A model generated the notes under the pieces. It did not search any database, had not been told where the DNA came from, and was given only the letters and a program-made list of their open reading frames with translations. Shown here piece by piece: positions 3,041 to 51,688 of a stretch of 64,000 nucleotides of DNA (positions are counted from its first letter, which is position 1; every line of letters begins with the position of its first letter). Position numbers and translations under genes: made by a program. The DNA lies in IMG/VR virus record IMGVR_UViG_3300005826_000294, positions 1-64,000 of that record; one strand, given 5' to 3'.

Positions 3041-4077
3041 AGTTCTAATCCCTCAACCAGATTAAGAAACTCTTTAGAATTTCCTAAGTTCTTATTTAAT
3101 AGTTCCGTAACAACTTGAACTTTAATATCATTTATACTTATAGAAGACATCACCTCACAAAATTTAGGAACATGTTCATTATATTTAAAAACAAAACTCA
3201 AAGTAGCCATAATAGATGTGTAAATTTTATCTATCCTGTTTGGCATAGCATTTTTATATAAAATGTCAGTTGGAAGTGGAAGATCTAATTTCGCCATGTA
3301 CTCGTAAACTTCCTTTGTAATTCCTTCTCCAACACATCCTTTAATATAATCAAAAGCAGAAATTCTCTTTGTCCTACATGTTGCCCAAAGCCTACACGTC
3401 ATTTCCCATGATCTTGGTGAAGCAAATGATCTATCTTCAACATTTCCTTGAATATTATCTCTATTTGTTTTAAGATAATTAGTAATAATAGAAGTAACAT
3501 AACTATAATTTTCGTCCCATAGTTTTTTATCTATAGGAGAATAATCAACAACTTTTTGTTTATTGAATTGAAGGTAATCTCCAAACATTTCAACATCAGG
3601 TTTAAGATCAAAATGACAAAAACGATTGGCTAGTGGTGGTTCTAAATCTCCAGAATTTGCCCCCTCTTCTGCAGGGTTACATGCAGCAATAATTAAAGTG
3701 TCCTTTGGAAGAACAACCTCTCCTACAACTTTTTCACAAACAATTCTCAAAGCCGCTGCTTGAACAGCAGGAGGAGCACAATTTAGTTCGTCAAAAAATA
3801 AAATCCCACCATTATGTTTAACTAAATTATTAGCCCATGATGGTGGAAAAAGTTCAATTCCATTTTCTGTCCTTACTGGAAGACCACCTACATCTGCCGG
3901 ATCTCTAATACTTAAAATTACAACCTCACAATGAAGTCCCATTTGTTTTGCTATGGAAGAAATAATAGCACTTTTACCAATTCCAGGGGAACCCCAAAAT
4001 AATAGAGGAATCCCTCTTCCACCATCACTTCGTTGTGTAGCCCAACTGACTTCTATTGCTTTGCTTAGAATTTCCAT
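3037..4077 (-). CDS. MoxR-family AAA+ ATPase
   Basis: Walker A GSPGIGKS, Walker B LFFDELN, AACNP, ANRF, SPRSWE; likely start ATG 4077 after GGTGA. Confidence 0.85.
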   Translation of the reverse strand: MEILSKAIEVSWATQRSDGGRGIPLLFWGSPGIGKSAIISSIAKQMGLHCEVVILSIRDPADVGGLPVRTENGIELFPPSWANNLVKHNGGILFFDELNCAPPAVQAAALRIVCEKVVGEVVLPKDTLIIAACNPAEEGANSGDLEPPLANRFCHFDLKPDVEMFGDYLQFNKQKVVDYSPIDKKLWDENYSYVTSIITNYLKTNRDNIQGNVEDRSFASPRSWEMTCRLWATCRTKRISAFDYIKGCVGEGITKEVYEYMAKLDLPLPTDILYKNAMPNRIDKIYTSIMATLSFVFKYNEHVPKFCEVMSSISINDIKVQVVTELLNKNLGNSKEFLNLVEGLEL

Positions 4078-4592: not shown

Positions 4593-4636
4593 GGTTTTTT
4601 TCCCAATTGATTTGTTGTTTATTAGATGTTCAATAG

Positions 4637-4709
4637 TAGGCCCGCAGGGATTTGAACCCTGAACCTTTTGGTTAAAAGCCAAATACTCTACCAGTTGAGT
4701 TACGGACCC
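4637..4709 (-). tRNA. tRNA-Lys(UUU)
   Basis: Cloverleaf; anticodon arm TTTGG-CTTTTAA-CCAAA; T-loop GTTCAAAT; no encoded CCA. Confidence 0.9.
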
Positions 4710-5768: not shown

Positions 5769-5841
5769 TAGGTGCGCAGGGACTTGAACCCTGAACCTTC
5801 TGGTTAAAAGCCGGATACTTTTCCAATTGAGTTACGAACCC
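5769..5841 (-). tRNA. tRNA-Lys(UUU), one mismatch each in the acceptor and anticodon stems
   Basis: Paralog of 4637-4709; loop CTTTTAA. Confidence 0.7.
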
Positions 5842-5848
5842 TAAAATT

Positions 5849-6394
5849 TTATCTATAAATCCCTTTTTTCGGATTACACTTCATACAATAATGTCTTACT
5901 TCCTTTGGTGAAGATATTTCCTTTACATGTGGGATACTGTTTCTCGGATCCAGACATGTCTCAGTCAGGGTTGCCCCTCGCAGATTCGCACTTATCAGAT
6001 TCGCGCCGTCCAGATCCGCGCCGGTCATATCCGCGCCTCGCAAATCCGCGGAGGTCAAGTCCGCGCCGGTCAGATCCGCGCCGGACAGATACGCCCATTG
6101 CAGATTCGCCCATCGCAGACACGCACCTCGCAGATCCGCGCCGGACAGATCCGCGCGAGCCAGATCCGCGCCGGACAGTTTCGCGCCGAACAGATCCGCG
6201 CCGGACAGTTTCGCGTTGGCCAGAACCGCGTCTCGCAGTTTCGCGTTGGCCAGAACCGCGTCTCGCAGATCCGCGCCGGACAGTTTCGCGCCTTGCAGAT
6301 TCGCGTTGGCCAGATCCGCGCCTTGCAGATTCGCGCCTCGCAGATCCGAGCCTGGCCTGATATTGTACTCGCGACCATTTATCGTCCTCTTCAC
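5849..6394 (-). CDS. Pentapeptide-repeat protein fused to the C-terminus of the 4717-5046 protein
   Basis: A(D/N)L.G repeats; ends ISSPKEVRHYCMKCNPKKGIYR. Confidence 0.85.
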   Translation of the reverse strand: MKRTINGREYNIRPGSDLRGANLQGADLANANLQGAKLSGADLRDAVLANAKLRDAVLANAKLSGADLFGAKLSGADLARADLSGADLRGACLRWANLQWAYLSGADLTGADLTSADLRGADMTGADLDGANLISANLRGATLTETCLDPRNSIPHVKEISSPKEVRHYCMKCNPKKGIYR

Positions 6395-7113
6395 CCTAGC
6401 ACCTCCAGTTTCCTACATCTCCACTTATTGCTTGTCCTGTGCAGATCTTCCCTCCTGCACCTGACACGTACGATACTTCGATCAGGGTATTTTTTTCCTA
6501 TCCATTCCCTACTCGCTAGGTAGATTCCGGGGTGACACTTTGTGTCAGACGTGGAGAAATAAGGGGCTGTGTATTCTCCAGGTGTGTAATGTGTGTCTCC
6601 AACCTCAGTAGACCTCTCGGTCCGCCAGCCGTAGATCCAGTCGTCACCCCCGATCTCGAGTCCTCCTCCGAGTATCTCTGCGTCTGTCACGCGTGGGATA
6701 CTGTTGCTCGGATCCAGACATGTCTTAGTCAGATCCGCGCCGGTCATATCCGCGCCTCGCAAATCCGCGGAGGTCAAGTCCGCGCCGGTCAGATCCGCGC
6801 CTCGCAGATCTGCGGAGGTCAGATCCGCGCCGGTCAGATCCGAGTCGGCCAGACCCGCGAAGGTCAAGTCCGCGCCGGTCAGATCCGCGCCTCGCAGATC
6901 CGCTCCGGTCATATCCGCGCCTCGCAGATTCGCGTGTCGCAGATCCGCGTTGGTCAGATACGCGCCTCGCAGATTTGCGTCTCGTAGATCCGCGCCGGCC
7001 AGATACGCTTGTCGCAGATCCCTCCATTGCAGATTCGCCCGTCGCAGATCCGCGCATCGTAGATTTGCGCCTGGCTTGATATTGTACTCGCGACCATTTA
7101 TCGTCCTCTTCAC
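6391..7113 (-). CDS. Pentapeptide-repeat protein with a C-terminal domain (CHPGIYLA motif)
   Basis: ADLTG/ADLRG repeats; 4-bp overlaps with both neighbours. Confidence 0.9.
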   Translation of the reverse strand: MKRTINGREYNIKPGANLRCADLRRANLQWRDLRQAYLAGADLRDANLRGAYLTNADLRHANLRGADMTGADLRGADLTGADLTFAGLADSDLTGADLTSADLRGADLTGADLTSADLRGADMTGADLTKTCLDPSNSIPRVTDAEILGGGLEIGGDDWIYGWRTERSTEVGDTHYTPGEYTAPYFSTSDTKCHPGIYLASREWIGKKYPDRSIVRVRCRREDLHRTSNKWRCRKLEVLG

Positions 7114-7547
7114 CCTAGCACCTCCAGTTTCCTACATCTCCACTTATCTCCTGCCTTGTGCAGATTTTTCCTTCTGCATCTCACACGCACGATACGTCGC
7201 CTGGGGTAGTTTTTTTCCAACCATTCCCTGCTAGAGAGGTAGAGACCAGGATTACGCTTTGTATTAGATGTAGAGAAATAAGGGGCTGTGTGTTTCCCTA
7301 AGATGTAATATGTTCTCCCGGATGTGACTGACTTCTCCACCCGCCATCCGTAGACCCAGCATGTGTCGCTGATGGACATTTCTGTCAGGTATGACTCGCG
7401 GAAGTTCGCCCAACGCAGATTCGCCCTAATGAGGTCTATCCCGCTGAAGTCTGACTCGCAGAGGTATGACTTGCGAAAATCCATACAACGCAGGTCCGCC
7501 CTCGGATAAATTTCGTACTCAACTCCGTTTTTATTTTTGATCTTCAT
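7110..7547 (-). CDS. Degenerate pentapeptide-repeat paralog with the same C-terminal domain
   Basis: Shares YGWR...TAPYFSTS...KWRCRKLEVLG with 6391-7113. Confidence 0.75.
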   Translation of the reverse strand: MKIKNKNGVEYEIYPRADLRCMDFRKSYLCESDFSGIDLIRANLRWANFRESYLTEMSISDTCWVYGWRVEKSVTSGRTYYILGKHTAPYFSTSNTKRNPGLYLSSREWLEKNYPRRRIVRVRCRRKNLHKAGDKWRCRKLEVLG

Positions 7548-8334: not shown

Positions 8335-8399
8335 TACCACAGTAGAATTCGGACCTACATGCCCTTTAATTCCGTCACTAGCCATTAGGCTACCGTGAC
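8335..8399 (-). pseudogene. Decayed tRNA-Leu-like remnant
   Basis: Shares CACGGTAGC and GTGGTACTAA ends with 9715-9773; arms scrambled. Confidence 0.4.
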
Positions 8400-8464
8400 T
8401 AACTATTTATCAAAAAATATTCTATACTTCCTATTTAAATAACTGAATTACAAATCAGTTTAAT

Positions 8465-8500
8465 ATTGACGGAGAAGGAATCGAACATCATTTCCATCAA
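8465..8500 (-). ncRNA. Degenerate acceptor/T-arm minihelix
   Basis: TTGATGGA...TTCGATTCCTTC-TCCGTCAA; paralog of 10911-10953. Confidence 0.35.
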
Positions 8501-8674
8501 AAACCAGATCCAAGCTAAAACAAACCACACGACGTTTGATGATAAACGTTTTTCCTCTTCGTTTATAAACACTTACATGTATTAATTGATACCACTAAGT
8601 TATAAAAGTATACGAATATGAATTTATACGCCCTTTTGGAAAAAAATTTTCTATAACAAAATTGGGATTAGTGA

Positions 8675-8736
8675 TGAAACCTGCTGGAGTCGAACCAGCT
8701 TCCGCCTTGGCGCTGTCCCATTGACAGATAGGTTTC
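8675..8736 (-). ncRNA. 62-nt tRNA-like RNA lacking a normal anticodon arm
   Basis: GAAACCT-AT-CTGTC-AATGG-GACAG-CGCC-AA-GGCG-GAA-GCTGG-TTCGACT-CCAGC-AGGTTTC-A; all stems perfectly paired. Confidence 0.7.
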
Positions 8737-8776
8737 GATTGAAATTATTTAATCAGTCAACTAATCAGTCAACTAA

Positions 8777-9331
8777 TCAGTCGGTATAACTATCTGTTAA
8801 GATATAAGTTCCGCAGTCCATTACACCCCAAGGTGGAAGACCAAAATATTGAAGAATAATGCGACGCTCCTCTTTCGAAAAAGGCGCATTACTTCTCTTC
8901 TTAATTTTAGAAGAATACTGATGAGTATATTTTCTGGTTTCGAGCATCAGAAGACTATCAACAATCAACTTCCGTTCAGCTTGCTCAACTTTCCAGACTT
9001 CCGCCTTTTTATGATGTTCTTCATTCGCAGCATCCCATTTGGCTTTGATGATTTTTGATGCCCTGTGAACAGCATCTTCATCCATGAAGTCTGTGTCAAT
9101 TGGCAACCAAGCACCTCTACCATCAATCCATACACCCGTTTCCACATGGCCAAATGAACAGGTTTCGATCTCTTTGTCGATTAAAACAGGCACAGTCATT
9201 CCAACTTCCATTTTATGACGATTAGAATTAATAAGGATAACCTTACCCTCAGAGAAAGCAACCCACCTATCTCCTCGCCTGGAGATATATTTGATGACTA
9301 CAACTACTGACCACATTGGACGAAGATTCAT
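8777..9331 (-). CDS. Hypothetical protein
   Basis: GAGGAG RBS; 184 aa. Confidence 0.7.
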   Translation of the reverse strand: MNLRPMWSVVVVIKYISRRGDRWVAFSEGKVILINSNRHKMEVGMTVPVLIDKEIETCSFGHVETGVWIDGRGAWLPIDTDFMDEDAVHRASKIIKAKWDAANEEHHKKAEVWKVEQAERKLIVDSLLMLETRKYTHQYSSKIKKRSNAPFSKEERRIILQYFGLPPWGVMDCGTYILTDSYTD

Positions 9332-9625: not shown

Positions 9626-9701
9626 TGGTGAGAGCGGAGGGGTTCGAACCCTCGACCTACAGATTAAAAGTCTGTTGCTCTTCCAGCTGAGCTACACTCC
9701 C
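9626..9701 (-). tRNA. tRNA-Lys(UUU) with encoded CCA
   Basis: Canonical cloverleaf; ACAGA-CTTTTAA-TCTGT. Confidence 0.95.
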
Positions 9702-9714
9702 ATAAAAATCTTAG

Positions 9715-9773
9715 TACCACGGGTGGGATTCGAACCCACACTGAACGGATTTTAAGTCCGTTGCTACCGTGGT
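9715..9773 (-). tRNA. D-armless tRNA-Leu(UAA)-like RNA
   Basis: ACCACGG/CCGTGGT acceptor; AACGGA-CTTAAAA-TCCGTT; GTGGG-TTCGAAT-CCCAC; only TAGC between acceptor and anticodon arm. Confidence 0.65.
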
Positions 9774-9780: not shown

Positions 9781-10263
9781 CTACACTATTATCTCCCAAC
9801 CCTTCATTCTCATTTTTTCCTCCCTCTTGTCAGTACACCTAATAAGTTTACGGGCTTTACCATTCCTTATGTTTTCAAGTATCTTTGGAACACTTAAATA
9901 ATCTAGAAAAGAGTTTAATCCATATCTGTTTAGTCGCAATGTATTAATATCGAAATCCGGAGAGAACACCAGATTTGACACTACATCAATTTGCATCTGT
10001 TCATCTCCGTGAACAACAAACCTTTCAAGATGAATACTATTATCATAATTACTACAATAATATTCAAGTGCCAAAACTCCAAATGACCCAAAATGACGTA
10101 GCAAAAACTTCTTAAAACTAAATCGATATTTTGGATCGATACAACAATCGATGTCATTTGTTGACTTACCGGCAATTGTGTCTCGTACATAACCTCCAAA
10201 CACAAAACCAAAGTTGTTAGCAATTTCATTTACGAGTTCTTTTTTATCCATGATGGCCTCCAC
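9781..10263 (-). CDS. Minimal nucleotidyltransferase (CCA/poly(A) polymerase head-like)
   Basis: FGGYVRD...DID catalytic motif and DFDIN (RDFTIN-like). Confidence 0.7.
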   Translation of the reverse strand: MEAIMDKKELVNEIANNFGFVFGGYVRDTIAGKSTNDIDCCIDPKYRFSFKKFLLRHFGSFGVLALEYYCSNYDNSIHLERFVVHGDEQMQIDVVSNLVFSPDFDINTLRLNRYGLNSFLDYLSVPKILENIRNGKARKLIRCTDKREEKMRMKGWEIIV

Positions 10264-10863: not shown

Positions 10864-10910
10864 TTTGTGGTTCCTTAATGAACAAATAAAATATTCATCA
10901 TATTTTTAAT

Positions 10911-10953
10911 ATTGACGAAGAAGGAATCGAACCTTCATAAACCATTTCGTCAA
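10911..10953 (-). ncRNA. 43-nt tRNA minihelix (acceptor stem plus T arm only)
   Basis: GTTGACGAA-ATGGTTAT-GAAGG-TTCGATT-CCTTC-TTCGTCAAT. Confidence 0.55.
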
Positions 10954-10961: not shown

Positions 10962-11798
10962 TTAAATAGACTTAAACAATAATCTATTCAAATCTTCCAT
11001 CGAAAGTCTCTCCTTCGTTTTTGCGATAAATCCGCCCGGATGGGCGAATAATACTTCCTCTTCATTAACAATCTTAGAAAAGTCTACCTTAGGGTGATCG
11101 TTAAATCTATATAGTGACCATCCTTCCCCCCTATTGTCATAGGAAACCATTGCTCCAGCATTAGGATATTGAGTCTTTTGAATATATGAAACTACACCCA
11201 TATCTGAATTAGAAAGTCCTTTTTCTACAATCAAAACATCCACTCCATTAAGCCAAATAAAATTAATTTCTTCCTTCAAACTTTCCATCCCCTTATACCA
11301 TTCCTCCGCGTTCTTTACCAGTTGCTCTCCAATCATGGAAAGCATAGTATAAAGATCACTTCCTACCTCAATATTTCTCTTTTTTGAAACCATATTCATA
11401 ATTGCTTCATCGACCGGAGACCAAAGACTATCAGTCCAATCATTTGGAAGACCAAGTCTCTTGGCGACCTGGAATGGACCTTTGCTATCCATTTCCATGG
11501 ATGTATCCCACCACATCAAAGAACTAAAACACTTATAAAGACTTGGAAATACTCCTAAGAGAAAATACCCAAACCCCCACGCCGGGTCATCGTCCCTTTT
11601 AAGTTGATGATGATCATAATTATTCAATTTAGGTTCGTGCTGATTCCCAACATCGACTACTAATACCTCAGGATCATTCAACTCTTCCTCTGTAGGATCC
11701 CTACGGAAAATGGAAATCGCCATCTTGAAGGCCACAATGGCCATTGTAAGAAAATCATCTCGATGTGTTGGACCTGAATGTACAATCAACTTTTTCAT
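10962..11798 (-). CDS. MYG1-family (DHH-like) exonuclease
   Basis: HSGPTHRDD, VVDVG, YDHHQ, LFAHPGGFIA; likely start MKKLIV. Confidence 0.8.
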   Translation of the reverse strand: MKKLIVHSGPTHRDDFLTMAIVAFKMAISIFRRDPTEEELNDPEVLVVDVGNQHEPKLNNYDHHQLKRDDDPAWGFGYFLLGVFPSLYKCFSSLMWWDTSMEMDSKGPFQVAKRLGLPNDWTDSLWSPVDEAIMNMVSKKRNIEVGSDLYTMLSMIGEQLVKNAEEWYKGMESLKEEINFIWLNGVDVLIVEKGLSNSDMGVVSYIQKTQYPNAGAMVSYDNRGEGWSLYRFNDHPKVDFSKIVNEEEVLFAHPGGFIAKTKERLSMEDLNRLLFKSI

Positions 11799-12188
11799 TG
11801 TCTTTCCTTTCGCGTTGTTGTGTTGATTTAAAAATCTATCCGCAACGATCCCATCCGGATCCACATGGACATTCATAGTGCCCGTTTTGTCTATTGTTGT
11901 CTAGATAATTAAAATAATAATCATACAACAAATCTTTCACTTCCTTCTCAGACATGCTTTTAAGAAGCGAAAGACTTATAACTTCTCTATTTTGCAAACT
12001 TCACAAACCCAAGTTTTTCAAGAATCTTTGAAGCTTTGGTTATTCCAACCGTCCCACAAACTTTGTTACAAATCTTGATTGCCTTTTCTGCGTTAATTTT
12101 TCTTTACTTTTTCTACTGATTTACACGCAGTTTTGAAAAAAAATTTTTTTATATAAAAATCAGTATTTTGATTTTAATGAGATCTTAT

Positions 12189-12245: not shown

Positions 12246-12513
12246 TTAGAATAACATATTTCTGTTATTATAGTGTTATTGTCTCGTAGAGACATGTACA
12301 CATACACATATCTATATGCCTTTAGTTATACGGCATTTGGCAAAAAATTAATTCTACTATGTGACCACCCCCGCCCCTCGTATATACACCTGATATTGCT
12401 CAGGTTTCTTGGGCCCACCCTCGTTTGAAAATAATGATCTTTTCGTGTAAGGTCCTAAAATTACAAAAGATCATTGTCCAAAGGACAAATGATCCAGCGC
12501 CATGATCTTTTAA

Positions 12514-12586
12514 CGGTGTTGTGGGAATCGAACCCACGTCTTTCGAGTCTTTCTGCTCGACGCTCTTCCAGTTGAGCTAAACACCT
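12514..12586 (-). tRNA. Atypical tRNA-like gene with an 8-nt anticodon loop (CAGAAAGA, Phe-like)
   Basis: D, anticodon (TCGAG/CTCGA) and T arms intact; 6-bp acceptor; A33 instead of U33. Confidence 0.6.
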
Positions 12587-12629
12587 TACATTTTTCTACT
12601 CCTGAACAATATTGAAATTATATGGTGGT

Positions 12630-13207: not shown

Positions 13208-13280
13208 TGAGAGCGGTGGGGCTCGAACCCACGACCTACAGATTAAAAGTCTGTTGCTCTTCCAACTGAGCTACGCTCCC
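13208..13280 (-). tRNA. tRNA-Lys(UUU)
   Basis: Canonical cloverleaf; near-identical to 9626-9701. Confidence 0.95.
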
Positions 13281-13309: not shown

Positions 13310-13524
13310 TTAATTCCCCTAGGGGAAAATGCTTCTTTTCCCAAAATGCTATCACTATGCTTGCTACTTGATAGTAGGTTGCTATACACTTACTATAATA
13401 CTGCTGTATTCTTCACAAGCATTTTACTGGGGGGTTTTAAAACTTTCCCATACAGCAAAATGCTAAGTGCTTGTAATCATTAGGGGCAGGTTCAAAGAGC
13501 CAAAACCCCCTAGAGAAATTAAAC
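13310..13524 (-). ncRNA. 215-nt structured element, copy 1
   Basis: Near-identical to 13936-14150; the ends form a 16-bp helix with two G-U pairs on the minus strand. Confidence 0.65.
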
Positions 13525-13850: not shown

Positions 13851-13935
13851 TGTCTTTCTCCTTGGTTGAAAAGTTCTACGACCGTTAGCATTACCCAGAC
13901 AATACCACGTGGAGGTGGTCGCTTATTGTCCATCT

Positions 13936-14150
13936 TTAATTCCCCTAGGGGAAAATGCTTCTTTTCCTAAAATGCTATCACTATGCTTGCTACTTAATAG
14001 AACAATGCTATACACTTACTATAATACTGCTGTATTCTTCACAAGCATTTTACTGGGGGTTTTTAAAACTTTCCCATACAGCAAAATGCTAAGTGCTTGT
14101 AATCATTAAGGGCAGGCTCAAAGAGCCAAAAACCCCTAGAGAAATTAAAC
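13936..14150 (-). ncRNA. 215-nt structured element, copy 2
   Basis: Direct repeat of 13310-13524. Confidence 0.65.
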
Positions 14151-39405: not shown

Positions 39406-39735
39406 TTATTTCTCCAATTTTTGTAAATGTTTTGCCCAAGAGTCAATATGGATTTCATAATACCAATTAGGCTTATCTTTTATTAATATAAGTCTAGGAA
39501 CTTTCCATTGAGCTACAATCTCATCATTCTTATAAACATCTAAAGCTCCATCATAATTGTTCCAAACTTCTATGTTTGAAGATGAAAGATGCTCTTTCAT
39601 ATCTTCCATGTCCAATTCAAATAATTGTTCAGAAATTCCCAAAGCTAAAAGAACTTCAACTAACCAATCATGCTTTTCTTCCTCTATAACTTTCTGTTCA
39701 TCTCCCCTATCTGCTAAAACCAACATTATCCACAC
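39406..39735 (-). CDS. Hypothetical protein
   Basis: ORF track. Confidence 0.65.
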   Translation of the reverse strand: MWIMLVLADRGDEQKVIEEEKHDWLVEVLLALGISEQLFELDMEDMKEHLSSSNIEVWNNYDGALDVYKNDEIVAQWKVPRLILIKDKPNWYYEIHIDSWAKHLQKLEK

Positions 39736-42700
39736 CTACTCTCACCACAATCTAAACAACTCATACATCCTTCTTCCATTCTTATATTTGAACTTCCACA
39801 CTTTTCACATAATACTTTCCTCATATCTAAACTTTCAGATAAAATATTACAAAGTCGTGCGGATAAACTTCCAGCATAAGAATTAGAATCTAATATGTCA
39901 ACCGCTTTATCTAAATTATTGGTTTTCATAGATAATGATAAAAATCTTGTTAATCTTGTTAAAGAATTATTGCTTCTATCAATATATTTTTGTATTCTAT
40001 CTTCCGCAACTCCCTGATTTGAAAGCATTTTTATTAGAGCATTACTAGTTTTAATAAATGAATCACTTTCTTTCTTTTTATAATTAAGAACAAAAACTTG
40101 ATAAGGATGCTTTATATTTTTATCCTTATAAGAAATCATTATGTAAAACTTATCTCCTCCTTCGGCTCTAACACATCTTGTAATAGTATCCATATTTGGA
40201 GTTTTTTTCTTCGCAAATTTCTCTGTAACCAAAACTCCTTCTCTTGATCCTTCTCTATAAACAGTAATTCCTTTTAATCCTTCTCGCCAAGCATCCATAT
40301 AAATTTGACTAACAACTTCTGGAGAAACATCTGCTGGTAAATTTATTGTACTAGAAATACTAGCATCAATGTGTTTTTGAAGAACCCCTTGAAGTTTAAC
40401 ACGATGTTGATAATCTATATCATGAGCGGTCACCCAATATTCTGGTAAATCTTGTTTCCCAACAATGTTAAAAAACCTAGAAATTCCCTGATGATATACT
40501 GAAAATTCCTTTTTCTCTTCTTTGCCCAACATTACATTTCTAGTATATGAAAAAGCAAAAATTGGTTCTGCACCTCCAGAACATTGAGCTATAATTGAAA
40601 GTGATCCGTTTGGAGCAATTGTTGAAATTGCGACATTTCTTAAACCATTTTCTTTAGCCTTTTGTTTTAATTCCTCTGGTAATGTAGCACAAAAACCACG
40701 AGAAAAATGAATATTTGGATCATATAAAGGAAATGGTCCACGAAGTTTTGCTAATTCAATAGAAGCATCATATTCATGTAATTTTTTAAACTCCATTAAT
40801 TTATCCGCAAACTGAATTGCTTCATCAGAATCATATTTTATTTTGAGAGAAACAAACATATCCGCAAGACCAGTAAGGCCTAACCCTATTCTACGACCAG
40901 ACACCGATGCTTCTTCCTGCTCAGCAAGAGCATGCTTTCCTATGTTTAATTGTACTACATTATCCAAATGTCTAACACCACGAGAAATCATCTCACCAAA
41001 TAATTCAAAATCAAATTCTGCTTGATCAGTAAAAGGATTTTTAACAAATTTATGTAATAATAGAGAAGATAATACGCAAGTTCCACCATTTTCTAATATT
41101 TGCTCACCACAATTTAAATTATTGAAATAAAACCATTTTCTTTTTCCAAAAGGAGTTGTACTTTCAAAAGCTCCTGTAAAAAAATTATGGAATTCATCTA
41201 CAGTACCATTGTAAACATTTTCATATCCACAAAACTCTACACTAACTACTCTATGATTATAATCTAAAGCAGATTCTTTTAATTGTTTGAAATTGAATTT
41301 TAATGTTTGGATAACATTGTTTTCGTTACAATATTGTTCCCATTCTTTTTTTCTAGGTTCTCTACTTAATTTAAATTTTAAATCTGTATATGCTTTAAGT
41401 TGATTTTCTTTATCTGTATATTCTTTAGATTTATATCCAGAATTTATATTACCCATATAAACAGAACGGCATTTTCTAGAACAAATTCCTGATTCTCTTC
41501 TACTATGATGAATTTCATATTCTTTACCACAAATTTCACAATTTTTAATAATAAAAATTTTCTTGTCCCTAATAATACAATTATATCCTTGTTCTAATAA
41601 TTCTAGATAGTATTTTTTATTTATAGGATCAAGATCAATATTATTTAAACCACATTTGTTAAATGCCCATTTTGATAATCCTAAAATCCCTCCAAGATGG
41701 TCATTACGCCATTTTGGAAATTGCTCCGTAATTTTATTATTTCTAGCATATTTAATCCAATCTTCATTAGAAAACATACATCCCAATTCTTTTGTAAGTA
41801 AAACTGCATGTTGCTTTAATTCTTCATTAGAAACATTACTAATGAATTTTGAATCATTTTCAAATCTAGTTATAATTCTTAGACTATCTCCTTTTTTTAA
41901 TTCATCAGTTCTTCTATAAGAACCATTTTTTAGTCTAAATTTATGATTATTAGTCACTTTAAGATGATTGCCATCATCAAATGTAATTTTATAAACTGGT
42001 TGATTATATCCAGTAATTCTAGGATTACGCATATTCCTTATAGATATTTTTTCATCATTGTCAAAACAAAATACAGGAACATCTTTACCTTCTTCAGCTA
42101 ATTGTTTAATCGAAACATTATTTCTTCCATCAGCAACATAAACCAAAGTATCACCAACAACACATGGATTTGTAGAATGAACTTTTAGTCTCTCATACGA
42201 ATCCGATGGAGACATTTCAACCATTTTTGTCCAAAATAAAAGACCAGGCTCTGCTGAATCACGAGCAGATAAGATAATTTTTTTCCATAAATCACGAGCC
42301 TTAATAGTTCTTTTTATTGTCTCGTGGTAAGTTTCAAAAGACAAAGTAAAATCATCATCATTTTCAACAGCCATCATAAAATCATCTGTTAATTTAATAC
42401 TTATATTAGCATATTTTACTTTATCTATATTATTATGCTTCATTTCAACAAACTTTTCAATATCTGGATGATTAACAGGAATTGTAATCATAAGAGCACC
42501 ACGACGCCCATGTTGTCCAACAAGCCCGGTAGTTAATGAATAAAGATCCATAAAACTTACAGCTCCTGTAGAAAATTTAGCACTATTAGACACCTTTGAA
42601 TCTTCTGGCCTAAGTTCTCCAATACATAGACCAATACCGCCACCGTATGAATATGTATGTGCTAATTTCTTTGCTGCATTGAAAATACCTTCTAAACTAT

Positions 42701-43103
42701 CATCTTCAATCTTTGTAACATAACAATTAGTGTAAGTTGCCTTATTAATATACTTATTTCCCAAAGCAAACATTTGCCTGCCTGCTGGTAAAAAATATTC
42801 ATATAATTCACGAAAATAACCTACTTTTTTTTTACCATTTGGAAACTCATTTTCTGCGGAAACTATACATTCTGCCCATCTGTCTTTTGCTTCTTCCAAA
42901 GTAAATTCAATTATCTTATTATCACCATCTCGAAGAGCATATTTTTTATAGAAAACAGATGTAGCAATTTCATCACCGCCAAAAGACTTTAAGGTTTTCA
43001 ATACATTTTCTCTATTTAGACCGCAATTATTTAATTCTGTATCAGATAAAATCCTATCTATTGTGGAACCAATATCATCATTTAAATAAATTAAGTTATT
43101 CAT
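39726..43103 (-). CDS. nrdJ: Ribonucleotide reductase large subunit (class II NrdJ-like) containing an intein
   Basis: PAGRQM, NCY, GGGIG, RRGA, NP/CGEQ split by the intein, TIAPNG, C-terminal zinc ribbon; no nrdB in the window. Confidence 0.85.
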   Translation of the reverse strand: MNNLIYLNDDIGSTIDRILSDTELNNCGLNRENVLKTLKSFGGDEIATSVFYKKYALRDGDNKIIEFTLEEAKDRWAECIVSAENEFPNGKKKVGYFRELYEYFLPAGRQMFALGNKYINKATYTNCYVTKIEDDSLEGIFNAAKKLAHTYSYGGGIGLCIGELRPEDSKVSNSAKFSTGAVSFMDLYSLTTGLVGQHGRRGALMITIPVNHPDIEKFVEMKHNNIDKVKYANISIKLTDDFMMAVENDDDFTLSFETYHETIKRTIKARDLWKKIILSARDSAEPGLLFWTKMVEMSPSDSYERLKVHSTNPCVVGDTLVYVADGRNNVSIKQLAEEGKDVPVFCFDNDEKISIRNMRNPRITGYNQPVYKITFDDGNHLKVTNNHKFRLKNGSYRRTDELKKGDSLRIITRFENDSKFISNVSNEELKQHAVLLTKELGCMFSNEDWIKYARNNKITEQFPKWRNDHLGGILGLSKWAFNKCGLNNIDLDPINKKYYLELLEQGYNCIIRDKKIFIIKNCEICGKEYEIHHSRRESGICSRKCRSVYMGNINSGYKSKEYTDKENQLKAYTDLKFKLSREPRKKEWEQYCNENNVIQTLKFNFKQLKESALDYNHRVVSVEFCGYENVYNGTVDEFHNFFTGAFESTTPFGKRKWFYFNNLNCGEQILENGGTCVLSSLLLHKFVKNPFTDQAEFDFELFGEMISRGVRHLDNVVQLNIGKHALAEQEEASVSGRRIGLGLTGLADMFVSLKIKYDSDEAIQFADKLMEFKKLHEYDASIELAKLRGPFPLYDPNIHFSRGFCATLPEELKQKAKENGLRNVAISTIAPNGSLSIIAQCSGGAEPIFAFSYTRNVMLGKEEKKEFSVYHQGISRFFNIVGKQDLPEYWVTAHDIDYQHRVKLQGVLQKHIDASISSTINLPADVSPEVVSQIYMDAWREGLKGITVYREGSREGVLVTEKFAKKKTPNMDTITRCVRAEGGDKFYIMISYKDKNIKHPYQVFVLNYKKKESDSFIKTSNALIKMLSNQGVAEDRIQKYIDRSNNSLTRLTRFLSLSMKTNNLDKAVDILDSNSYAGSLSARLCNILSESLDMRKVLCEKCGSSNIRMEEGCMSCLDCGESRCG
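41112..42164 (-). mobile_element. 351-aa intein in the RNR active-site loop
   Basis: Starts CVVGDTLV, TNNHKF block B, VYNGTV block F, ends NNLN before Cys+1. Confidence 0.88.
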
Positions 43104-44298: not shown

Positions 44299-45738
44299 TT
44301 ATGGTAAAATAATTCGACCACGATAGGGTTGATCTTCTTCAACTTCTTCAAAACTTAATCCTTCATCTAAATTCTTCTCATAATATCCACCCTCATCAAA
44401 ACAAAGAATAATTTCCTCATCTTCCTCATTTTTAGTATAAAGTTCAATACGAGCTGCCCATAAATCCCAAATATATTCAAGTGTTTTGGAAGCAAATTTA
44501 TGATCAAGAGTCCCAGATTCAGAACTATTATGTTTCAAAATAAGAGTACCATCAGGACCAATTTCAGTAATCACAATCTTAGGAACTCCTCCATTATATA
44601 AAGAAGAAATTAGAGTTTCTACAACACAATCTCTAATTCTCTCTTTAACTTCAATAAACTTATCTCCCTTATGATCCTTTGGATAATCATCAACATATCC
44701 AAAAGTAAATAATTTCATTTCTTCAACCAAATCAGCAGTTAAATAATTTCTAATAAAAGATATATCATTTTCGTTTTTAATTACATCAAATACTTTTTTT
44801 CTCCCTTCACCTTTCCCATATTTTTCATCCCATCTTTTTTCGATGTCTTTAAAAATCTTAAACCCAAGATAATATGGGTTTATTCTAAAGGGATTCCCGC
44901 CAGGTTGAACAACTTTTTCATGAGTTCTTAGAAAATCTACATATTCTGAAGAACTTAAATTATAATTATACATAACTTCCGCATGCCAATAACTAGCTGC
45001 CCCCTCATGAACTATCTTTGTTTGCATCTGTGGATAAAAATAAAACTGCTCTTCTCTTATAATATCAAGAACATCCTTCTCCCATTCTTCCAATGGAGCA
45101 TAATTTATAAAAAACCATAATAAATCTTTTTCTGGATGTGGAGGAATTTTATTACAAGAAACATTAGGTTTTGGTTTCTTTTTTATTAACAAATCATCAA
45201 ACTCATTTGGTTTTCTTCTATTACATTTTACAGGTTTAACTCCATATGGTTTTCTATAAAGTCCCTTATGCCAATCAATATGATGACTCAAAGCCATACC
45301 AATATCCATTAAATGCTCAACTTTTTCAAACCCATATTTTTCAATATAATCTTCAATTCTTCCTGCATGCTCGGCAGCATGTTTAATCATATTTCTATTA
45401 GTATTTTCAAACATATAATTGTTTTTAAACACAGCACTATGCCCTTGACAATGCGCTACTATAAACAAATTTTGAACTTCTGTGTTCGTATCTAAAAGAA
45501 AAGCATAAGAAGGATTGTTGTTTAATATTACTTCATAAATTTTGGAATATCCCATCTCGCCTGTTGCTTTTTGAAAATCATATGAACGACCATAACTCCA
45601 ATGCCTAGCTCTAGTAGGAAGACCATAAGCACATATATTAAACATCGTAGATCGTTCAATTATCTCATGAACAACAGGAAAAGCATCAATCCCAAGTTCT
45701 AATCCAACTTCTATTACTTCTTCAAATCGTTTATTCAT
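44299..45738 (-). CDS. spoVR: SpoVR/YcgB-family protein
   Basis: HWSYG, YEV..N.NP, AHCQGH, QTKIVHEG.ASYWH, NPYYLG. Confidence 0.92.
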   Translation of the reverse strand: MNKRFEEVIEVGLELGIDAFPVVHEIIERSTMFNICAYGLPTRARHWSYGRSYDFQKATGEMGYSKIYEVILNNNPSYAFLLDTNTEVQNLFIVAHCQGHSAVFKNNYMFENTNRNMIKHAAEHAGRIEDYIEKYGFEKVEHLMDIGMALSHHIDWHKGLYRKPYGVKPVKCNRRKPNEFDDLLIKKKPKPNVSCNKIPPHPEKDLLWFFINYAPLEEWEKDVLDIIREEQFYFYPQMQTKIVHEGAASYWHAEVMYNYNLSSSEYVDFLRTHEKVVQPGGNPFRINPYYLGFKIFKDIEKRWDEKYGKGEGRKKVFDVIKNENDISFIRNYLTADLVEEMKLFTFGYVDDYPKDHKGDKFIEVKERIRDCVVETLISSLYNGGVPKIVITEIGPDGTLILKHNSSESGTLDHKFASKTLEYIWDLWAARIELYTKNEEDEEIILCFDEGGYYEKNLDEGLSFEEVEEDQPYRGRIILP

Positions 45739-46901
45739 CTTCCACCTACATTTGGTAAAAATTCTTTAAGGGTTTGGTAAATATCTTCACGCTTCTCTAT
45801 TGTGGCAACTACGAACCTCTCATTATCAGCAAGTTCTCCGTCTTTTTCAAAAATATCAGCTAAATTAGACCACAATGATGTTCCTCCAGACCATCCCCAA
45901 AAATTAGAAGATACTTGAACTTCACCATATCCTACAGATTGACATAATGGAAGAATGTCTTTTACAGATTTTAAACACCTACTATTATCTTCCGGCCAAT
46001 TATCTCCATCGGAAAAAGCAAATACATAATTATTCCAAATATTTGTTGGAAACCTATCTTCTATTATTTTTCTCGCTAAAATAAATCCCGAACTAACCAT
46101 TGTCCCACCAGATTGAGAAATCTTGAAAAAATTCTCCTCTTCAACTTCCTTTGCCTCTGTATCATGAGCAATAAATACTAATTCCACATTATCATACTTT
46201 TTCTCAAGAAACCTAACCATCCACCAAAAAAATGATTTAACAATATATTTCTTTTCAGAAGTCATGCTTCCTGATCTATCCATAATAAGAATAACTGTAG
46301 CATTAGAATGCCGCTCAATAACTTCTTCATATACTTTATATCTTAAATCAGATGGATCAAAACCTCCGATTTTCATTTTCCCCTTCATAGCATTCTTTCT
46401 CATATTTCTTAATACAGTCCTTCTCTTATCTATATTAGAAGCTAATCCTTTCTCTGCTATATCTTGAAAAACAACATCTTCGGTTTCTATCTCTATAGAT
46501 TTTTCTTTTTGCTCCATCCAAGGTAGATCAAGATCTTCAAGCATCATTTCTACAATTTCTTCAATATCTACCTCTTCCTCATAAACATCTTCACCAGATT
46601 CTTGACCGGCCTTTCCTTTTCCCTGACCAGGATTTTCTTTAGCAATTATATCACCAGGATCACCATCCCCTTGCCCCACACCCTTTTGCTTATTGTTCTT
46701 GCCAAATTTAAATCTCCACATATCCAAAAACTTAATGGGAACTTTTACTTTCTTTCCACCCTTTGAAGAAATTATATTTTCTTCAGATATTAAATCATGT
46801 AGATTCTTTTTAATTGCTTCCCTTATTCTCTGTTTATGTCTTTCCGAGTCAATAGCCCCCGGTTTTCTTAAACTCCAAATATCTTTAAAACTATCGGACA
46901 T
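45735..46901 (-). CDS. yeaH: YeaH/YhbH-family (DUF444, VWA) protein
   Basis: MDRSGSM, FIAH, SGGTMVSS, SDGDNW. Confidence 0.92.
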   Translation of the reverse strand: MSDSFKDIWSLRKPGAIDSERHKQRIREAIKKNLHDLISEENIISSKGGKKVKVPIKFLDMWRFKFGKNNKQKGVGQGDGDPGDIIAKENPGQGKGKAGQESGEDVYEEEVDIEEIVEMMLEDLDLPWMEQKEKSIEIETEDVVFQDIAEKGLASNIDKRRTVLRNMRKNAMKGKMKIGGFDPSDLRYKVYEEVIERHSNATVILIMDRSGSMTSEKKYIVKSFFWWMVRFLEKKYDNVELVFIAHDTEAKEVEEENFFKISQSGGTMVSSGFILARKIIEDRFPTNIWNNYVFAFSDGDNWPEDNSRCLKSVKDILPLCQSVGYGEVQVSSNFWGWSGGTSLWSNLADIFEKDGELADNERFVVATIEKREDIYQTLKEFLPNVGGR

Positions 46902-46909
46902 TTTTCACC

Positions 46910-48835
46910 TTATCTCGTTCTAGACATAATGTTATTTACATAACGAAGTAATTCATTAGCACTCTCTGCAGTATATCCATGATAATCAACTAAAGAACTA
47001 ATAACAGAATTTAATTTCTTTAACGCTTCAGGTTCAGGATTTCTTGTAGAAACTGTTAATCTAATAGTGTCAGCTCTTTCCTCAAAAAGTTGCTTCTGTA
47101 AAGCTTCCTTTAATTTTGGGTGGCTTTGCCACTTATATTCTCCATCTTCATTCTTAGTCTTTAACATTTTTCTATAAACTTCAGATCTAAATGAATCCTT
47201 TCCTGTGCTTGTAATCTCTACCTTTTCTTCAACACTTCTCATTAATTCTTCATCTGGATCAACTAACTCATCCCACTCATTTTTACACTTACTATCATCT
47301 AAATATGCAGCAACATTATCAAGATAATTTTCAAGCAAATTGTTAATTTCATATTCAAAATTAACAAAAAAAGCCTTTTGAACCTCATTCATCGCAATCT
47401 TATTATATTCTTCAACACATAAAGAAACAAGATTTTCTAGTTTTTCTACTGCTTCATCATCAAGTTTAGCATTTGTTGGAAGACCTTCCTTAATACTTCT
47501 AAGAGCACTAATAGGAGTAATATATGTTGCTCCATGCTTTGCTAAACACGCAGAAAGTCTATTAATAATATATCTTGGAGAAACTCCATCTAATCCTTCC
47601 CTTTCAGCCGATTTTTGAAGTTCCTTAATATCCTCTTTCGTAAATCCATCAACATCCTTACCATTATATAAATGCATCTTTTGTAGAATTGTTATGCTCT
47701 TATCTTTTGGTTCTTCCAATCTGGACAAAATAGCAAACATCGCGGCAATTTTAAGAGTATGAGGAGCAATATGAATATTCTTAAATCCATCCGCTTCTTT
47801 CATTAATTTCTCATAAATCCTAACCTCATTATCTACCCCTAGATTATATGGAAACGGAATTAACCAAAGTCTATCATGTAGAGCTTCTTCAGTCTTATCT
47901 CCTCGGAACTTTAAAAATTCTGTTTCATTAGAATGACCTACAGGAACTAAATCAGCATAAATTAACGGAAACCTTTCAGTTTTAATTCTCTTTTCTTGAA
48001 CCAATGTTAAAAGGATATATCTGAATTTTGGATCTACCTTCAAAAGCTCAATAAATTCCATAACTCCTCTATTAGAAATATTAAGCTCTCCATCAAAGTT
48101 ATAAGCTAAAGGATGAGACTCTACTCCAAACTCTTCCAATTTGGCAAAATTAACAGACCCTGTAAGTTCTGATTGTGATTGACTCTTTTTATCAGCTGGT
48201 TGAAATGTTCCAATACCAATTCTATTCATCTCCGATAAAAATATTCTCTTTACAGGAATTTTCCAGAAATCTTCTCCAAATTCATTTTGTAATCTATAAG
48301 CACATTTTGGACAAAGATCTCCTTCAATAGAAATTCCGTACTCTTCCTTTAATCCTTTTCGTGCGGAATGAGGTATAGCATTAAGAGGATTTTCAAACAT
48401 TGGACAACCATCAATCGCAAAAAGCCTTCCACTCTCTGTCCTAGAAAAAAGTTCTAAACCCTTTTTAAGAGTTGTAACAAATTGACTCTTACCAGAGCTA
48501 GTGGGTCCCCATAATAATAAAAGTCTTTTCTTCGCATCAGATCCATTCCCCGCAGCTCTAAAAAACTCCATAACTTGAGCTAAAACATGATCGATTCCAA
48601 ACAACTCATCTTCAAAAAATTTATATTTTGGTGTCTTATCAATAAAATCAACTCCCTGTTCTTCAATCATTCTACAAACTCTAGAATGTGATGTTTCATT
48701 ATAAGAAGGATTTTCCAAAACCATAGGAAGATAGTCTTTTAGTGTTCCAGACCATTTAGTAAGATCCAAATTACTTGTAGATTCTTCTACTAAATTTAAA
48801 ATACTTTTCTTCTTACTGTTTGTTACTTTGATCAT
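46910..48835 (-). CDS. prkA: PrkA/YeaG AAA+ serine kinase
   Basis: LWGPTSSGKS, CPMFENPL, NRGVMEFIE, HIAPHTL. Confidence 0.95.
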   Translation of the reverse strand: MIKVTNSKKKSILNLVEESTSNLDLTKWSGTLKDYLPMVLENPSYNETSHSRVCRMIEEQGVDFIDKTPKYKFFEDELFGIDHVLAQVMEFFRAAGNGSDAKKRLLLLWGPTSSGKSQFVTTLKKGLELFSRTESGRLFAIDGCPMFENPLNAIPHSARKGLKEEYGISIEGDLCPKCAYRLQNEFGEDFWKIPVKRIFLSEMNRIGIGTFQPADKKSQSQSELTGSVNFAKLEEFGVESHPLAYNFDGELNISNRGVMEFIELLKVDPKFRYILLTLVQEKRIKTERFPLIYADLVPVGHSNETEFLKFRGDKTEEALHDRLWLIPFPYNLGVDNEVRIYEKLMKEADGFKNIHIAPHTLKIAAMFAILSRLEEPKDKSITILQKMHLYNGKDVDGFTKEDIKELQKSAEREGLDGVSPRYIINRLSACLAKHGATYITPISALRSIKEGLPTNAKLDDEAVEKLENLVSLCVEEYNKIAMNEVQKAFFVNFEYEINNLLENYLDNVAAYLDDSKCKNEWDELVDPDEELMRSVEEKVEITSTGKDSFRSEVYRKMLKTKNEDGEYKWQSHPKLKEALQKQLFEERADTIRLTVSTRNPEPEALKKLNSVISSLVDYHGYTAESANELLRYVNNIMSRTR

Positions 48836-50446: not shown

Positions 50447-50719
50447 ATTTTTTCTCCTATATCCCATTATACGAAACTAGAATTCAAAATTCAACGCAAT
50501 TTTGGAAAAAATTATTCAAGAACAATAATATTAAATTTGTTATTTGAGTTAGATAAAGCACAATATCTATGATAACCATCAATTATCCTATATTTTTTAT
50601 CATCTTTTATATAAACTCCAATTGGATATTTATAATCCTTATATTTTTCAACAATCTGTTTATCTAATTTTCTATAATGTTCTAGATTTGGAATTACTAA
50701 ATCATCTAAACCGACTGTT

Positions 50720-51397
50720 TTAATTGAACATTTTTTTTAATTTATTTATTTCTTTTAATAAATACCCATATTCATTTATTAAAACATATTTAATTATATT
50801 AATTGGGGTTAAAAACAATAATTTACTAATATTTATTTCTATTTCTTTTAAAGAATCTAGTTTTATTGATTTAATTTCTTCACCATAATAACTATGATGG
50901 CAATCAACATAATAATTATCTTTATTATTTAGATGATAAAATTGTAATATTCTTTCTATACCATATTCTAAAATTACATTATTATTATTATTATTATTAT
51001 TAATTAAAAACCTTTTATTTAAATTATTAGATATTTCTCCAATTATTACTTCTATAATACGAGATTCATCTACTTCATTTATCTTTAAATCTATTATTTT
51101 TCCACAACGACAGATTGAATCACAATTTTCTTCTATACAATTATAACTATAATCATAATCTACATCCATATAATGGTATAGATCTACATTTAAAGCGTCA
51201 TTTATTATATTTTCAACTGAAAAACTTTTATGAAGTCGTATTTTAGTTCCTTTTTCAGAAATAGTTTTTTTATAAATTTCTACTTTATCATTTTGTTTTA
51301 TTGTACTAAAAGGTATTTTATATTTTTTAAGTTCTACTCCTTTTAAATCTTTTTTTAGATATTTTTTACCAACACGCACATCATATATGTATTTCAT
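50720..51397 (-). CDS. Hypothetical protein with a Cys cluster and poly-Asn tract
   Basis: CIEENCDSICRC; AAT microsatellite near 50975-51000. Confidence 0.65.
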   Translation of the reverse strand: MKYIYDVRVGKKYLKKDLKGVELKKYKIPFSTIKQNDKVEIYKKTISEKGTKIRLHKSFSVENIINDALNVDLYHYMDVDYDYSYNCIEENCDSICRCGKIIDLKINEVDESRIIEVIIGEISNNLNKRFLINNNNNNNNVILEYGIERILQFYHLNNKDNYYVDCHHSYYGEEIKSIKLDSLKEIEINISKLLFLTPINIIKYVLINEYGYLLKEINKLKKMFN

Positions 51398-51406
51398 TAT
51401 TTCTCC

Positions 51407-51688
51407 TTATTTATTACCATAATACTCTAATGCTCCTTTTTCTCCAAGATAGTCTGCGGCTTTTTCAATATCACCATTTCTGATATCTTCAATATCTTTT
51501 TTTGCTTCTTGTTTTATTTGTTCTCCTAATTCTTTAGCATCTCTAAATACTTGGGCATTTGTGTTAGAAATTAATCTTTTTATTAATTCTCCACATTCTG
51601 GACATTCTGTTAATGGTTCATCTGTAATTGGTTGAAATTCTTCAAAAAAATAATCACAAACATTACATTTATATTCATAAAACGGCAT
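51407..51688 (-). CDS. FmdB-family zinc-ribbon protein
   Basis: MPFYEYKC..C...FE..Q...CPEC. Confidence 0.85.
   Translation of the reverse strand: MPFYEYKCNVCDYFFEEFQPITDEPLTECPECGELIKRLISNTNAQVFRDAKELGEQIKQEAKKDIEDIRNGDIEKAADYLGEKGALEYYGNK

Follow-up and report, generated by a model that had tools for sequence, protein, structure and literature searches.

Phage tRNA islands are usually read as codon-usage helpers, and more recently as spares held against tRNA-cleaving immunity. What use, then, would a huge phage have for an island gene that keeps the body of a tRNA but lacks the arm that reads codons? The question arises in a 64-kb stretch of DNA, hereafter the window, which is the first 64 kb of IMG/VR UViG_3300005826_000294 (301,683 bp); the same genome is also represented by a 312,596-bp JGI contig in which the window coordinates are identical. 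Its source is an uncultured huge phage of ~300 kb. GC content of the window is ~30% and every long ORF lies on the minus strand. The genome carries phage and jumbo-phage genes for a UvsW-like helicase, a DnaB-like helicase and a tubulin-like protein, as well as a ribonucleotide reductase with an intein, PrkA and SpoVR. No DNA match, close or distant, was found among 50,697 GenBank phages, and the nearest cultured phage reaches only ~35% identity in a helicase. Landmarks on the minus strand of the window include the intein-interrupted ribonucleotide reductase (39726-43103), the SpoVR/PrkA pair (44299-48835), two proteins of ~540 aa with six DUF4379 zinc-finger repeats each (48836-53499), and a tubulin/FtsZ-like protein (59793-61193).

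Ten tRNA genes, identified by matches to tRNA models, are found on the minus strand between 4.6 and 13.7 kb, and the element considered here sits inside this island on the same strand. Its parts are as follows.

8675..8736, minus strand: tRNA-like RNA gene (TLS), 62 nt, supported by sequence, fold, covariance model and covariation
8736-8730 with 8682-8676, minus strand: acceptor stem, 7 bp
8729-8728, minus strand: linker A8 U9
8727-8713, minus strand: D arm, 5-bp stem (8727-8723 with 8717-8713) and loop AAUGG
8712-8703, minus strand: stub CGCCAAGGCG, 10 nt, replacing the anticodon arm
8702-8700, minus strand: variable loop GAA, 3 nt
8699-8683, minus strand: T arm, 5-bp stem (8699-8695 with 8687-8683) and loop UUCGACU
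8675, minus strand: discriminator A

An earlier, sequence-only reading had described a 7-bp acceptor, a 5-bp D stem and a canonical T arm with no stem mismatch, and both the sequence and RNAfold bear this out. All 17 core pairs are Watson-Crick, and the cloverleaf is at once the minimum free energy and the centroid structure (-25.0 kcal/mol, z = -3.5), with none of 200 dinucleotide shuffles folding as well. The same reading placed a 10-nt stub where the anticodon arm should be, which stands, but drew it as 4 bp with a 2-nt loop, which does not; RNAfold closes it as 3 bp with a 4-nt loop. The body thus has the 7-bp acceptor, the 5-bp T arm with a UUCRANY loop and the D-loop GG of a tRNA, but not its anticodon arm of 5 bp, 7-nt loop, U33 and 3-nt anticodon. 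The element is intergenic, as no ORF of at least 60 aa overlaps it on either strand. ARAGORN made no call at 8675-8736, and no Rfam family, including tRNA, mascRNA, tmRNA and YrlA, matched these positions at E <= 10, the curated threshold for membership of the tRNA family RF00005 being 29 bits. When a covariance model built from three copies was run on the 64-kb window, the element scored 81 bits (E ~6e-20), and the only other matches were ordinary tRNAs at E >= 0.05.

Conserved homologs do exist. About nine further copies came from four other phage lineages among those sampled, although two of these copies are weak or truncated at a contig end. The known total is only about ten copies in about five lineages, five of the copies being paralogs in one genome. 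In the list below L numbers denote sequence pieces; L018, L045, L047 and L048 are parts of one 460,879-bp contig.

L003 6352-6419: TLS homolog with compensated changes in the acceptor and D stems, from a T-arm scan
L048 3129, 3584, 11706, 13659 and 19713: five TLS homologs, all in one 460.9-kb contig
L061 359-427: TLS homolog, covariance model, 77 bits
L061 1929-1951: TLS 5' fragment, covariance model
L060 1187-1237: mini version of the TLS, ~49-50 nt, covariance model

The member on L060 is only probable, since its cloverleaf is 1.8 kcal/mol above the minimum free energy. L018 came from a loop-anchored pattern search of metagenomes, and the covariance model from three sequences recovered four more paralogs (L048 3129, 3584, 11706 and 13659). 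This single metagenome scan, which also found L010, used a gap minimum of 26 nt against 25 nt in the window copy, and hence missed short-armed relatives. In IMG/VR, patterns for the exact core, the loops only, the 3' half, a relaxed acceptor and a relaxed linker returned only the window's own contig and structureless chance matches. In GTDB genomes the patterns matched 17 times, but no match folded like a tRNA, so within the species sampled the family belongs neither to host tRNAs nor to prophages. L051, retrieved through a homolog of the neighboring gene, has no copy. We also considered a sequence in the element's own neighborhood (8335-8399) as a family member and ruled it out as a decayed tRNA with an unpaired middle. 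The family has so far been seen only in a sparsely sampled clade of huge phages, on contigs of 300-460 kb.

Standard tools handle these copies poorly. RF00005 gives the L003 6352 homolog 22.6 bits, the L048 copies have no Rfam match at E <= 1, and the labels that ARAGORN attaches to paralogs, Ser(AGA), Leu(AAG), Lys(UUU) and Phe(AAA), are a meaningless assortment. The window copy, the L003 copy and several L048 copies are skipped by standard annotation altogether. An encoded CCA is found in only two of nine copies; we tried it as a marker, and it does not separate the elements from true tRNAs.

Other unusual RNAs were seen on the relatives' contigs. The 460-kb relative has a full tmRNA (L048 6689-7038, Rfam 165 bits) in the same tRNA-rich region, and two tRNAs whose anticodon loops are tetraloops (L048 16642-16712, equivalent to L045 6847-6917, and L047 6545-6607). 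One of the pair has a 5-bp stem with AUAA and an Rfam tRNA score of 56 bits, the other a 4-bp stem with AUCA; both sit on other, more canonical scaffolds than the TLS, and loss of the anticodon loop thus recurs in this clade. L003 has a ~100-nt tRNA-like sequence with two T-arm motifs inside a single acceptor stem (3497-3594; Ser(CGA) to ARAGORN), which lies ~200 nt downstream of the L003 copy of the protein gene described below, the place taken by the element in other lineages. It also has an oversized tRNA-like sequence of 94 nt (2613-2706; Rfam tRNA 30.7 bits).

The arm that replaces the anticodon arm is the hypervariable part of the family, with these lengths.

Window copy: 10 nt
L048 11706: 13 nt
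L048 13659: 15 nt
L003 copy: 16 nt
L048 19713 and L061 359: 17 nt
L048 3129: 21 nt
L048 3584: 23 nt
L060 copy: none, a 5-nt linker in its place

Where present, each arm closes into a hairpin whose loop measures 3-7 nt, and in six copies the three outer arm pairs covary too. The canonical layout of a 5-bp stem and 7-nt loop occurs only in L048 19713 and L061 359, where the loop can zip to a triloop, and a 7-nt loop can still be drawn in two or three members (L048 19713, 3129 and 11706). Three paralogs have UUU-centered mini-loops reminiscent of the tRNA-Lys loop. Because the anticodon arm has become a free-running hairpin of ~0-23 nt, the TLS cannot read codons.

The rest of the structure is kept by selection. 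Across three sequences all 51 pair cells were paired, with double changes at six pairs. In six full-length copies 98.3% of 120 cells (118/120) were paired against 78.7% in shuffles, 11 of 20 pairs had double compensatory changes (25 cells with such a change) and the covariation score was 0.70 against 0.28; none of 500 shuffles reached the observed values, a significance that is inflated because five of the copies are paralogs in one genome. As a control the 3' partner was slid by 1-3 columns, and the covariation score was then at most 0.12. A segment-by-segment table of seven copies held one non-pair in 119 cells at a core identity of 60-81%, and D-stem pairs 2-5 and T-stem pairs 1-3 are each made by two to four pair types. 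Near-invariant positions are acceptor pairs 4-7, A8, the first D-stem pair, the D-loop GG and the T-loop UUCRA, with acceptor pairs 4-7 and A8 holding across genomes of 30% and ~50% GC. Conservation of the acceptor is partly by construction, as the pattern for the first three members fixed acceptor pairs 3-7; the members found later with the model share it too. The sister paralogs at L048 11706 and 13659 have short, evidently homologous arms and differ by a compensated T-stem pair, which indicates that the structure was still under selection after the canonical arm, and decoding with it, was lost. For the window copy alone the argument is weaker. Its syntenic counterpart, L048 3129, has a 21-nt arm, and the recent loss of 11 nt from an arm of this kind could have produced the stub, in which case perfect pairing is no proof of selection after the deletion.

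These data also bear on what had been proposed from the letters of the window. Pairing had been judged unlike random decay, and the covariation among homologs and the retained elbow nucleotides (D-loop GG, T-loop UUCRA) agree. The proposed search of Rfam and of homologs for covariation has now been made: no Rfam family matches the element, while conserved homologs, whose lack would have counted against the reading, were recovered and their stems covary. The suggestion of a tRNA mimic survives in the form of a tRNA-shaped, non-decoding RNA gene with its pairing under selection, on the strength of the covariation and the conserved elbow.

Which protein, if any, belongs with this RNA? The conserved upstream neighbor is a gene on the same strand.

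8777..9331, minus strand: gene for a 184-185 aa protein, conserved upstream neighbor of the TLS

The protein is laid out as an N-terminal TRAM/OB-like barrel (residues ~6-66), a 43-residue helix and a small C-terminal alpha/beta domain, in which a conserved motif, LPPWGV..D....I.TDSYTD, runs right up to the stop codon. A profile search of 1.84 billion representative proteins returned only six clusters, an IMG/VR search returned only the window's own contig, and a 60%-identical homolog lies on contigs L003-L007. It is the only ORF family common to positions 1-20 kb of the window and 31 kb of L048 plus L047. Counted from the stop codon of this gene, the TLS starts after 40 nt in the window (16 nt without a repeat described below) and after 7 nt in L048/L049; the other lineages compare as follows, with protein identity to the window.

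L061: 40% identity, TLS 8 nt after the stop codon
L060: 45% identity, TLS 4-5 nt after the stop codon
L003: 60% identity, TLS 3 kb downstream
L062: 31% identity, no TLS copy
L063: 28% identity, no TLS copy

The site behind this gene is therefore a frequent one, the TLS being found 4-40 nt behind the stop codon in three to four lineages including the window, but adjacency breaks down in L003 as well as in L062 and L063, whose proteins are the two most distant homologs, and it could reflect inherited gene order. L063, a distantly related phage contig, also encodes ribosomal protein L12 (6710-7282).

We assign a TRAM, that is RNA-binding, fold to the N-terminal domain on the basis of a predicted structure. 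A first AF2 model from three sequences was discarded (pLDDT 65.7), and a model from nine sequences reached a pLDDT of 93.9 with the five-stranded beta-barrel of TRAM domains. Foldseek (probability 1.00) and VIA-align both put TRAM domains of RNA-modifying enzymes first among PDB structures, namely those of RlmCD, MiaB, RimO and RumA, together with stand-alone TRAM proteins, and S1/OB RNA-binding domains ranked after them. Superposition gave an rmsd of ~2 A over 54-60 residues with VIA Z scores of 6.0-6.7, and because Z is below 8 the assignment is safer for the fold class (TRAM/S1/OB) than for one exact family. At the sequence level, against a threshold of 21 bits for Pfam TRAM (PF01938), the window protein has no match, the homolog P0011 scores 30.4 bits, and P0010 (15.5 bits) and P0008 (12 bits) match weakly; P0011 is linked to the window protein by profile at E 2.7e-22. 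NCBIfam PyTRAM matches one family member at 8e-6. Beyond TRAM, PHROGs, PADLOC and NCBIfam offered no functional name, no defense or anti-defense family matched, and neither the sequence nor the fold resembled SmpB. A PDB sequence-profile search was uninformative, and a viral structure library gave only generic S1/OB matches.

The DNA around the window copy has three further features.

8747..8782, minus strand: 12-mer in three tandem copies, two of them GACTGATTAGTT and the third diverged
8744..8772, minus strand: sigma-70-like promoter match, TTGACT, 17-nt spacer, AATAAT (10/12 match)
8622..8661, minus strand: repeated intergenic motif ending in GCGTATAAAT, ~15 nt downstream of the TLS

The triplication starts where the upstream gene ends, on its last codon and stop codon, and accounts for the longer spacer here, 40 nt instead of ~16 nt, the extra 24 nt being the duplicated last codon, stop codon and next six bases. 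It yields three in-phase copies of the stop region and the TTGACT motif, and the only two exact copies of the 12-mer in the window are those at 8747..8782. The sigma-70-like match, created by this repeat, has its -10 element ending 8 nt before the 5' end of the TLS; we do not count it as a promoter, since it is not significant alone and the region is no richer in such matches than shuffled sequence. The downstream motif has a second copy at 12119-12158 (two found, none expected by chance) and may serve the next transcription unit as a phage promoter. Beyond the window copy there are ~460 nt of non-coding DNA. The same spacer holds the decayed sequence at 8335-8399 (minus strand) and a half-tRNA remnant at 8459-8486 made of a T arm and 3' acceptor strand, which is identical at 27 of 28 positions to another at 10905-10932; the pieces at 8335-8399 and 8459-8486 are true tRNA debris and contrast with the intact element. 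Most copies are wedged between same-strand ORFs: they start 1-16 nt behind a stop codon and stop 14-26 nt short of the next start codon, and their 3' end is followed at once by a ribosome-binding site. Spacing is just as tight around the true tRNAs of these arrays.

The island also has four genes, in two paralog pairs within 9 kb, for tRNA-Lys(UUU), the tRNA on which nucleases of the PrrC and PARIS types classically act.

4636-4709, minus strand: tRNA-Lys(UUU)
5769-5841, minus strand: tRNA-Lys(UUU)
9626-9701, minus strand: tRNA-Lys(UUU)
13208-13280, minus strand: tRNA-Lys(UUU)

A 59-nt tRNA without any D arm (9715-9773, minus strand) lies 13 nt upstream of the tRNA-Lys at 9626-9701 and directly after a small nucleotidyltransferase ORF; it scores 52 bits with Rfam tRNA with the D-arm positions deleted, reads UAA in the loop CUUAAAA, and was missed by ARAGORN. 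Another tRNA (12512-12587, minus strand; Rfam 50 bits) has an 8-nt anticodon loop in which ARAGORN sees the four-base anticodon GAAA; it might decode quadruplets, suppress frameshifts or simply represent a further non-standard arm. An association of small HDV-like ribozymes with phage tRNAs has been described, and weak matches to HDV-like ribozymes, all below curated thresholds, were seen next to tRNA genes in the window (13853-13933, minus strand, 23.9 bits) and in L003 (986-1061 and 1904-1972, 41 and 27 bits). Three adjoining pentapeptide-repeat genes (5849-7547, minus strand) have ~50% GC in a genome of 30%, a spike caused by internal 15-nt periodic repeats, and on a related contig a pentapeptide-repeat gene comes after the homolog of a different gene of the island. 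A 160-aa protein (9781-10263, minus strand) weakly matches the head domain of poly(A) polymerase/CCA-adding enzymes and a PHROG nucleotidyltransferase family, and a 304-aa protein (10962-11876, minus strand) is a MYG1/DHH-like putative exonuclease; the two could be phage enzymes for processing tRNA ends. A 215-nt direct repeat (13310-13524 and 13936-14150, 95% identity) flanks a tRNA-Asp/tRNA-Leu pair.

How might such an RNA be made and used? The family keeps those parts that tRNA-processing and tRNA-binding proteins would read, namely acceptor, T arm, compact D arm and elbow. RNase P, RNase Z and the CCA-adding enzyme use the acceptor, T arm and elbow. It would be logical to assume that RNase P and a 3' tRNA-processing activity excise the TLS from a polycistronic transcript and that CCA is added as for the neighboring tRNAs, a natural route given that most wedged copies have no room for a promoter or terminator. 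The TLS may then be bound by the TRAM-fold protein encoded immediately upstream, a candidate interaction suggested by conserved adjacency, and the resulting small RNA-protein particle would work in trans by mimicking a tRNA before some tRNA-handling factor of the host or the phage. The conserved neighboring gene points to a dedicated RNA-protein pair. On these grounds the TLS is probably matured like a tRNA and partnered with the upstream protein, and we give somewhat better than even chances to the reading in which a selectively maintained, non-decoding tRNA-like RNA with this putative maturation and partner acts as a mimic in trans. A more specific version is offered only tentatively: the anticodon-less RNA and its TRAM-fold protein may form a dedicated particle, with paralogs bearing different arm hairpins, that impersonates a tRNA toward a host tRNA-handling machine. 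Possible targets are a defense nuclease or toxin that docks on the acceptor end or the elbow, and an enzyme that processes or modifies tRNAs. The ribosome is a third, and there the protein's long helix would take the place of the anticodon arm.

A simpler account would make the TLS a cis-acting processing signal only, like mitochondrial tRNA punctuation or the mascRNA element of MALAT1, its tRNA shape letting enzymes cut apart the flanking cistrons while the released RNA has no role. We rate this as unlikely, even though most copies are wedged between same-strand ORFs close to stop and start codons and the free variation of the arm fits the needs of RNase P and RNase Z, which require only acceptor, T arm and elbow. 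Placement does not discriminate, as true tRNAs are wedged as tightly; processing needs no specific acceptor sequence, yet pairs 4-7 and A8 are near-invariant; the window copy precedes not a cistron but ~460 nt of non-coding DNA; and linkage to one particular RNA-binding protein gene goes unexplained. The near-invariant acceptor and the linked RNA-binding protein together speak for more than a cleavage signal, namely for a specific partner acting in trans. At the opposite extreme the TLS would be a neutral leftover: a single recent internal deletion would have removed the anticodon loop of a tRNA, and the resulting pseudogene would still await decay. We consider this highly improbable. This would fit the window copy, as the outer four pairs of the 21-nt arm of L048 3129 align with the window stub, so that a single 11-nt deletion suffices, and clearly decayed tRNA pieces share the spacer. 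It does not fit the family: nearly all members lack a canonical arm, yet 118 of 120 cells are paired with many compensated changes, short-armed sister paralogs were compensated after the loss, and an arm-less version persists behind the same gene at 45% protein identity.

Two further readings assign the RNA a definite task. The sequence-only reading had cast it as a decoy that soaks up tRNA-targeting defense nucleases and cannot be cut for want of an anticodon loop. Some observations are in keeping with this. The island has four tRNA-Lys(UUU) genes along with Leu(UAA), Ile(UAU) and Met, classes that known anticodon nucleases attack; three paralogs have UUU-centered mini-loops like that of tRNA-Lys; and phage tRNAs are known to counter tRNA-cleaving defenses (PMC11555353; 10.1101/2024.01.02.573894). 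However, AriB of PARIS reads the anticodon loop, and phages evade it not by decoys but by supplying working replacement tRNAs that it cannot cleave (10.1101/2024.01.02.573894). The known case is thus a working tRNA, and the TLS would be a poor competitor for a PARIS-type enzyme because the loop that this nuclease reads is absent. It also should be considered that a stoichiometric decoy would be inefficient against a multi-turnover enzyme, that the window stub, the L003 arm and that of L048 19713 are unlike any tRNA's anticodon loop, and that the neighboring protein matches no defense or anti-defense family. As a decoy for anticodon nucleases the element seems improbable, the idea being mechanistically doubtful and a poor fit with PARIS. 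The last reading is an aminoacylated carrier: the RNA would be charged through identity elements in its acceptor and directed to the ribosome with barrel and long helix replacing the anticodon arm in the manner of SmpB, or else would donate its amino acid to a non-ribosomal transferase. Taken jointly these two forms have the faintest chance of the readings weighed here. The acceptor stem is conserved as in an isoacceptor family, the partner is a small beta-barrel followed by a 43-residue helix, and the 460-kb relative encodes its own tmRNA, so that the clade does manipulate translation. Against this, the discriminator is A or G, G3:U70 is limited to two copies and a long variable arm is missing, so that no known anticodon-independent synthetase identity set is matched; CCA is encoded in only two of nine copies; and the protein has no SmpB sequence or fold match.

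The element points to genes in such islands that are not decoders. Our data suggest that they include conserved tRNA look-alikes with a likely protein partner of their own. Since annotation skips or mislabels these elements, tRNA counts for huge phages are possibly inflated or distorted. Should the RNA-protein pairing hold, a 62-nt RNA and a 184-aa protein would make a compact, testable system for examining the benefit to a virus of displaying a tRNA's acceptor and elbow face with no anticodon. The dedicated particle would then be a new class of phage RNA-protein tRNA mimic.

Full-text literature searches found no description of anticodon-less tRNA-like phage genes or of a TRAM partner, and several known systems can be set beside this one. 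A likeness to mascRNA, tmRNA and Y RNA had been proposed, and it holds for the tRNA-like modules they share but not as membership, the element falling outside all three. YrlA with Ro/Rsr (RF02553) likewise does not decode, resembles a tRNA in its acceptor, T arm, D arm and elbow, and is encoded, as here, beside the gene of an RNA-binding protein thought to be its partner; some jumbo phages are reported to have a TROVE protein with a tRNA-like partner (PMC7824862). In contrast, our element lacks the long Ro-binding helix, it pairs its 5' and 3' ends in a normal acceptor stem of 7 bp, and its neighbor is TRAM-fold and not a TROVE/Ro ring. RF02553 has no match on the element, the only weak YrlA match overlapping ordinary tRNAs at 9664-9755, and no Pfam TROVE match was found among the 30 window ORFs scanned. 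The tRNA-like domain of tmRNA also has acceptor and T arm without anticodon and is bound by a small beta-barrel protein, SmpB. Unlike tmRNA, the element has no mRNA-like part, no G3:U70 (pair 3:70 of the window copy is A-U) and a true 5-bp D stem, its neighbor is not SmpB-like, and neither ARAGORN nor Rfam found a tmRNA in the window.

Among tRNA-derived RNAs, the tRNA-Lys of T5 acting against PARIS (10.1101/2024.01.02.573894) and phage tRNAs acting against retrons (PMC11555353) come from a likewise tRNA-Lys(UUU)-rich island, with changes likewise concentrated in the anticodon arm. Such tRNAs decode and carry point changes in the anticodon stem-loop, whereas the element cannot replace a cleaved tRNA. 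The tRNA-Other of Bacillus cereus is similarly tRNA-derived and non-canonical and has a cellular effect without a role in translation, but keeps a full cloverleaf (PMC3399842). Armless mitochondrial tRNAs, also tRNA-derived, lose the D or T arm and keep the anticodon arm, the opposite of the loss seen here. The mascRNA/MEN-beta small RNA (RF01684) is likewise a ~60-nt cloverleaf with a shortened anticodon arm that does not decode, released from a longer transcript by RNase P and RNase Z and working as a processing signal. It is part of a vertebrate nuclear lncRNA, whereas the element belongs to a phage genome, and RF01684 matches only ordinary tRNAs in the window, weakly, and not the element. 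We know of no partner protein gene for mascRNA. The element is best placed among the non-decoding tRNA mimics.
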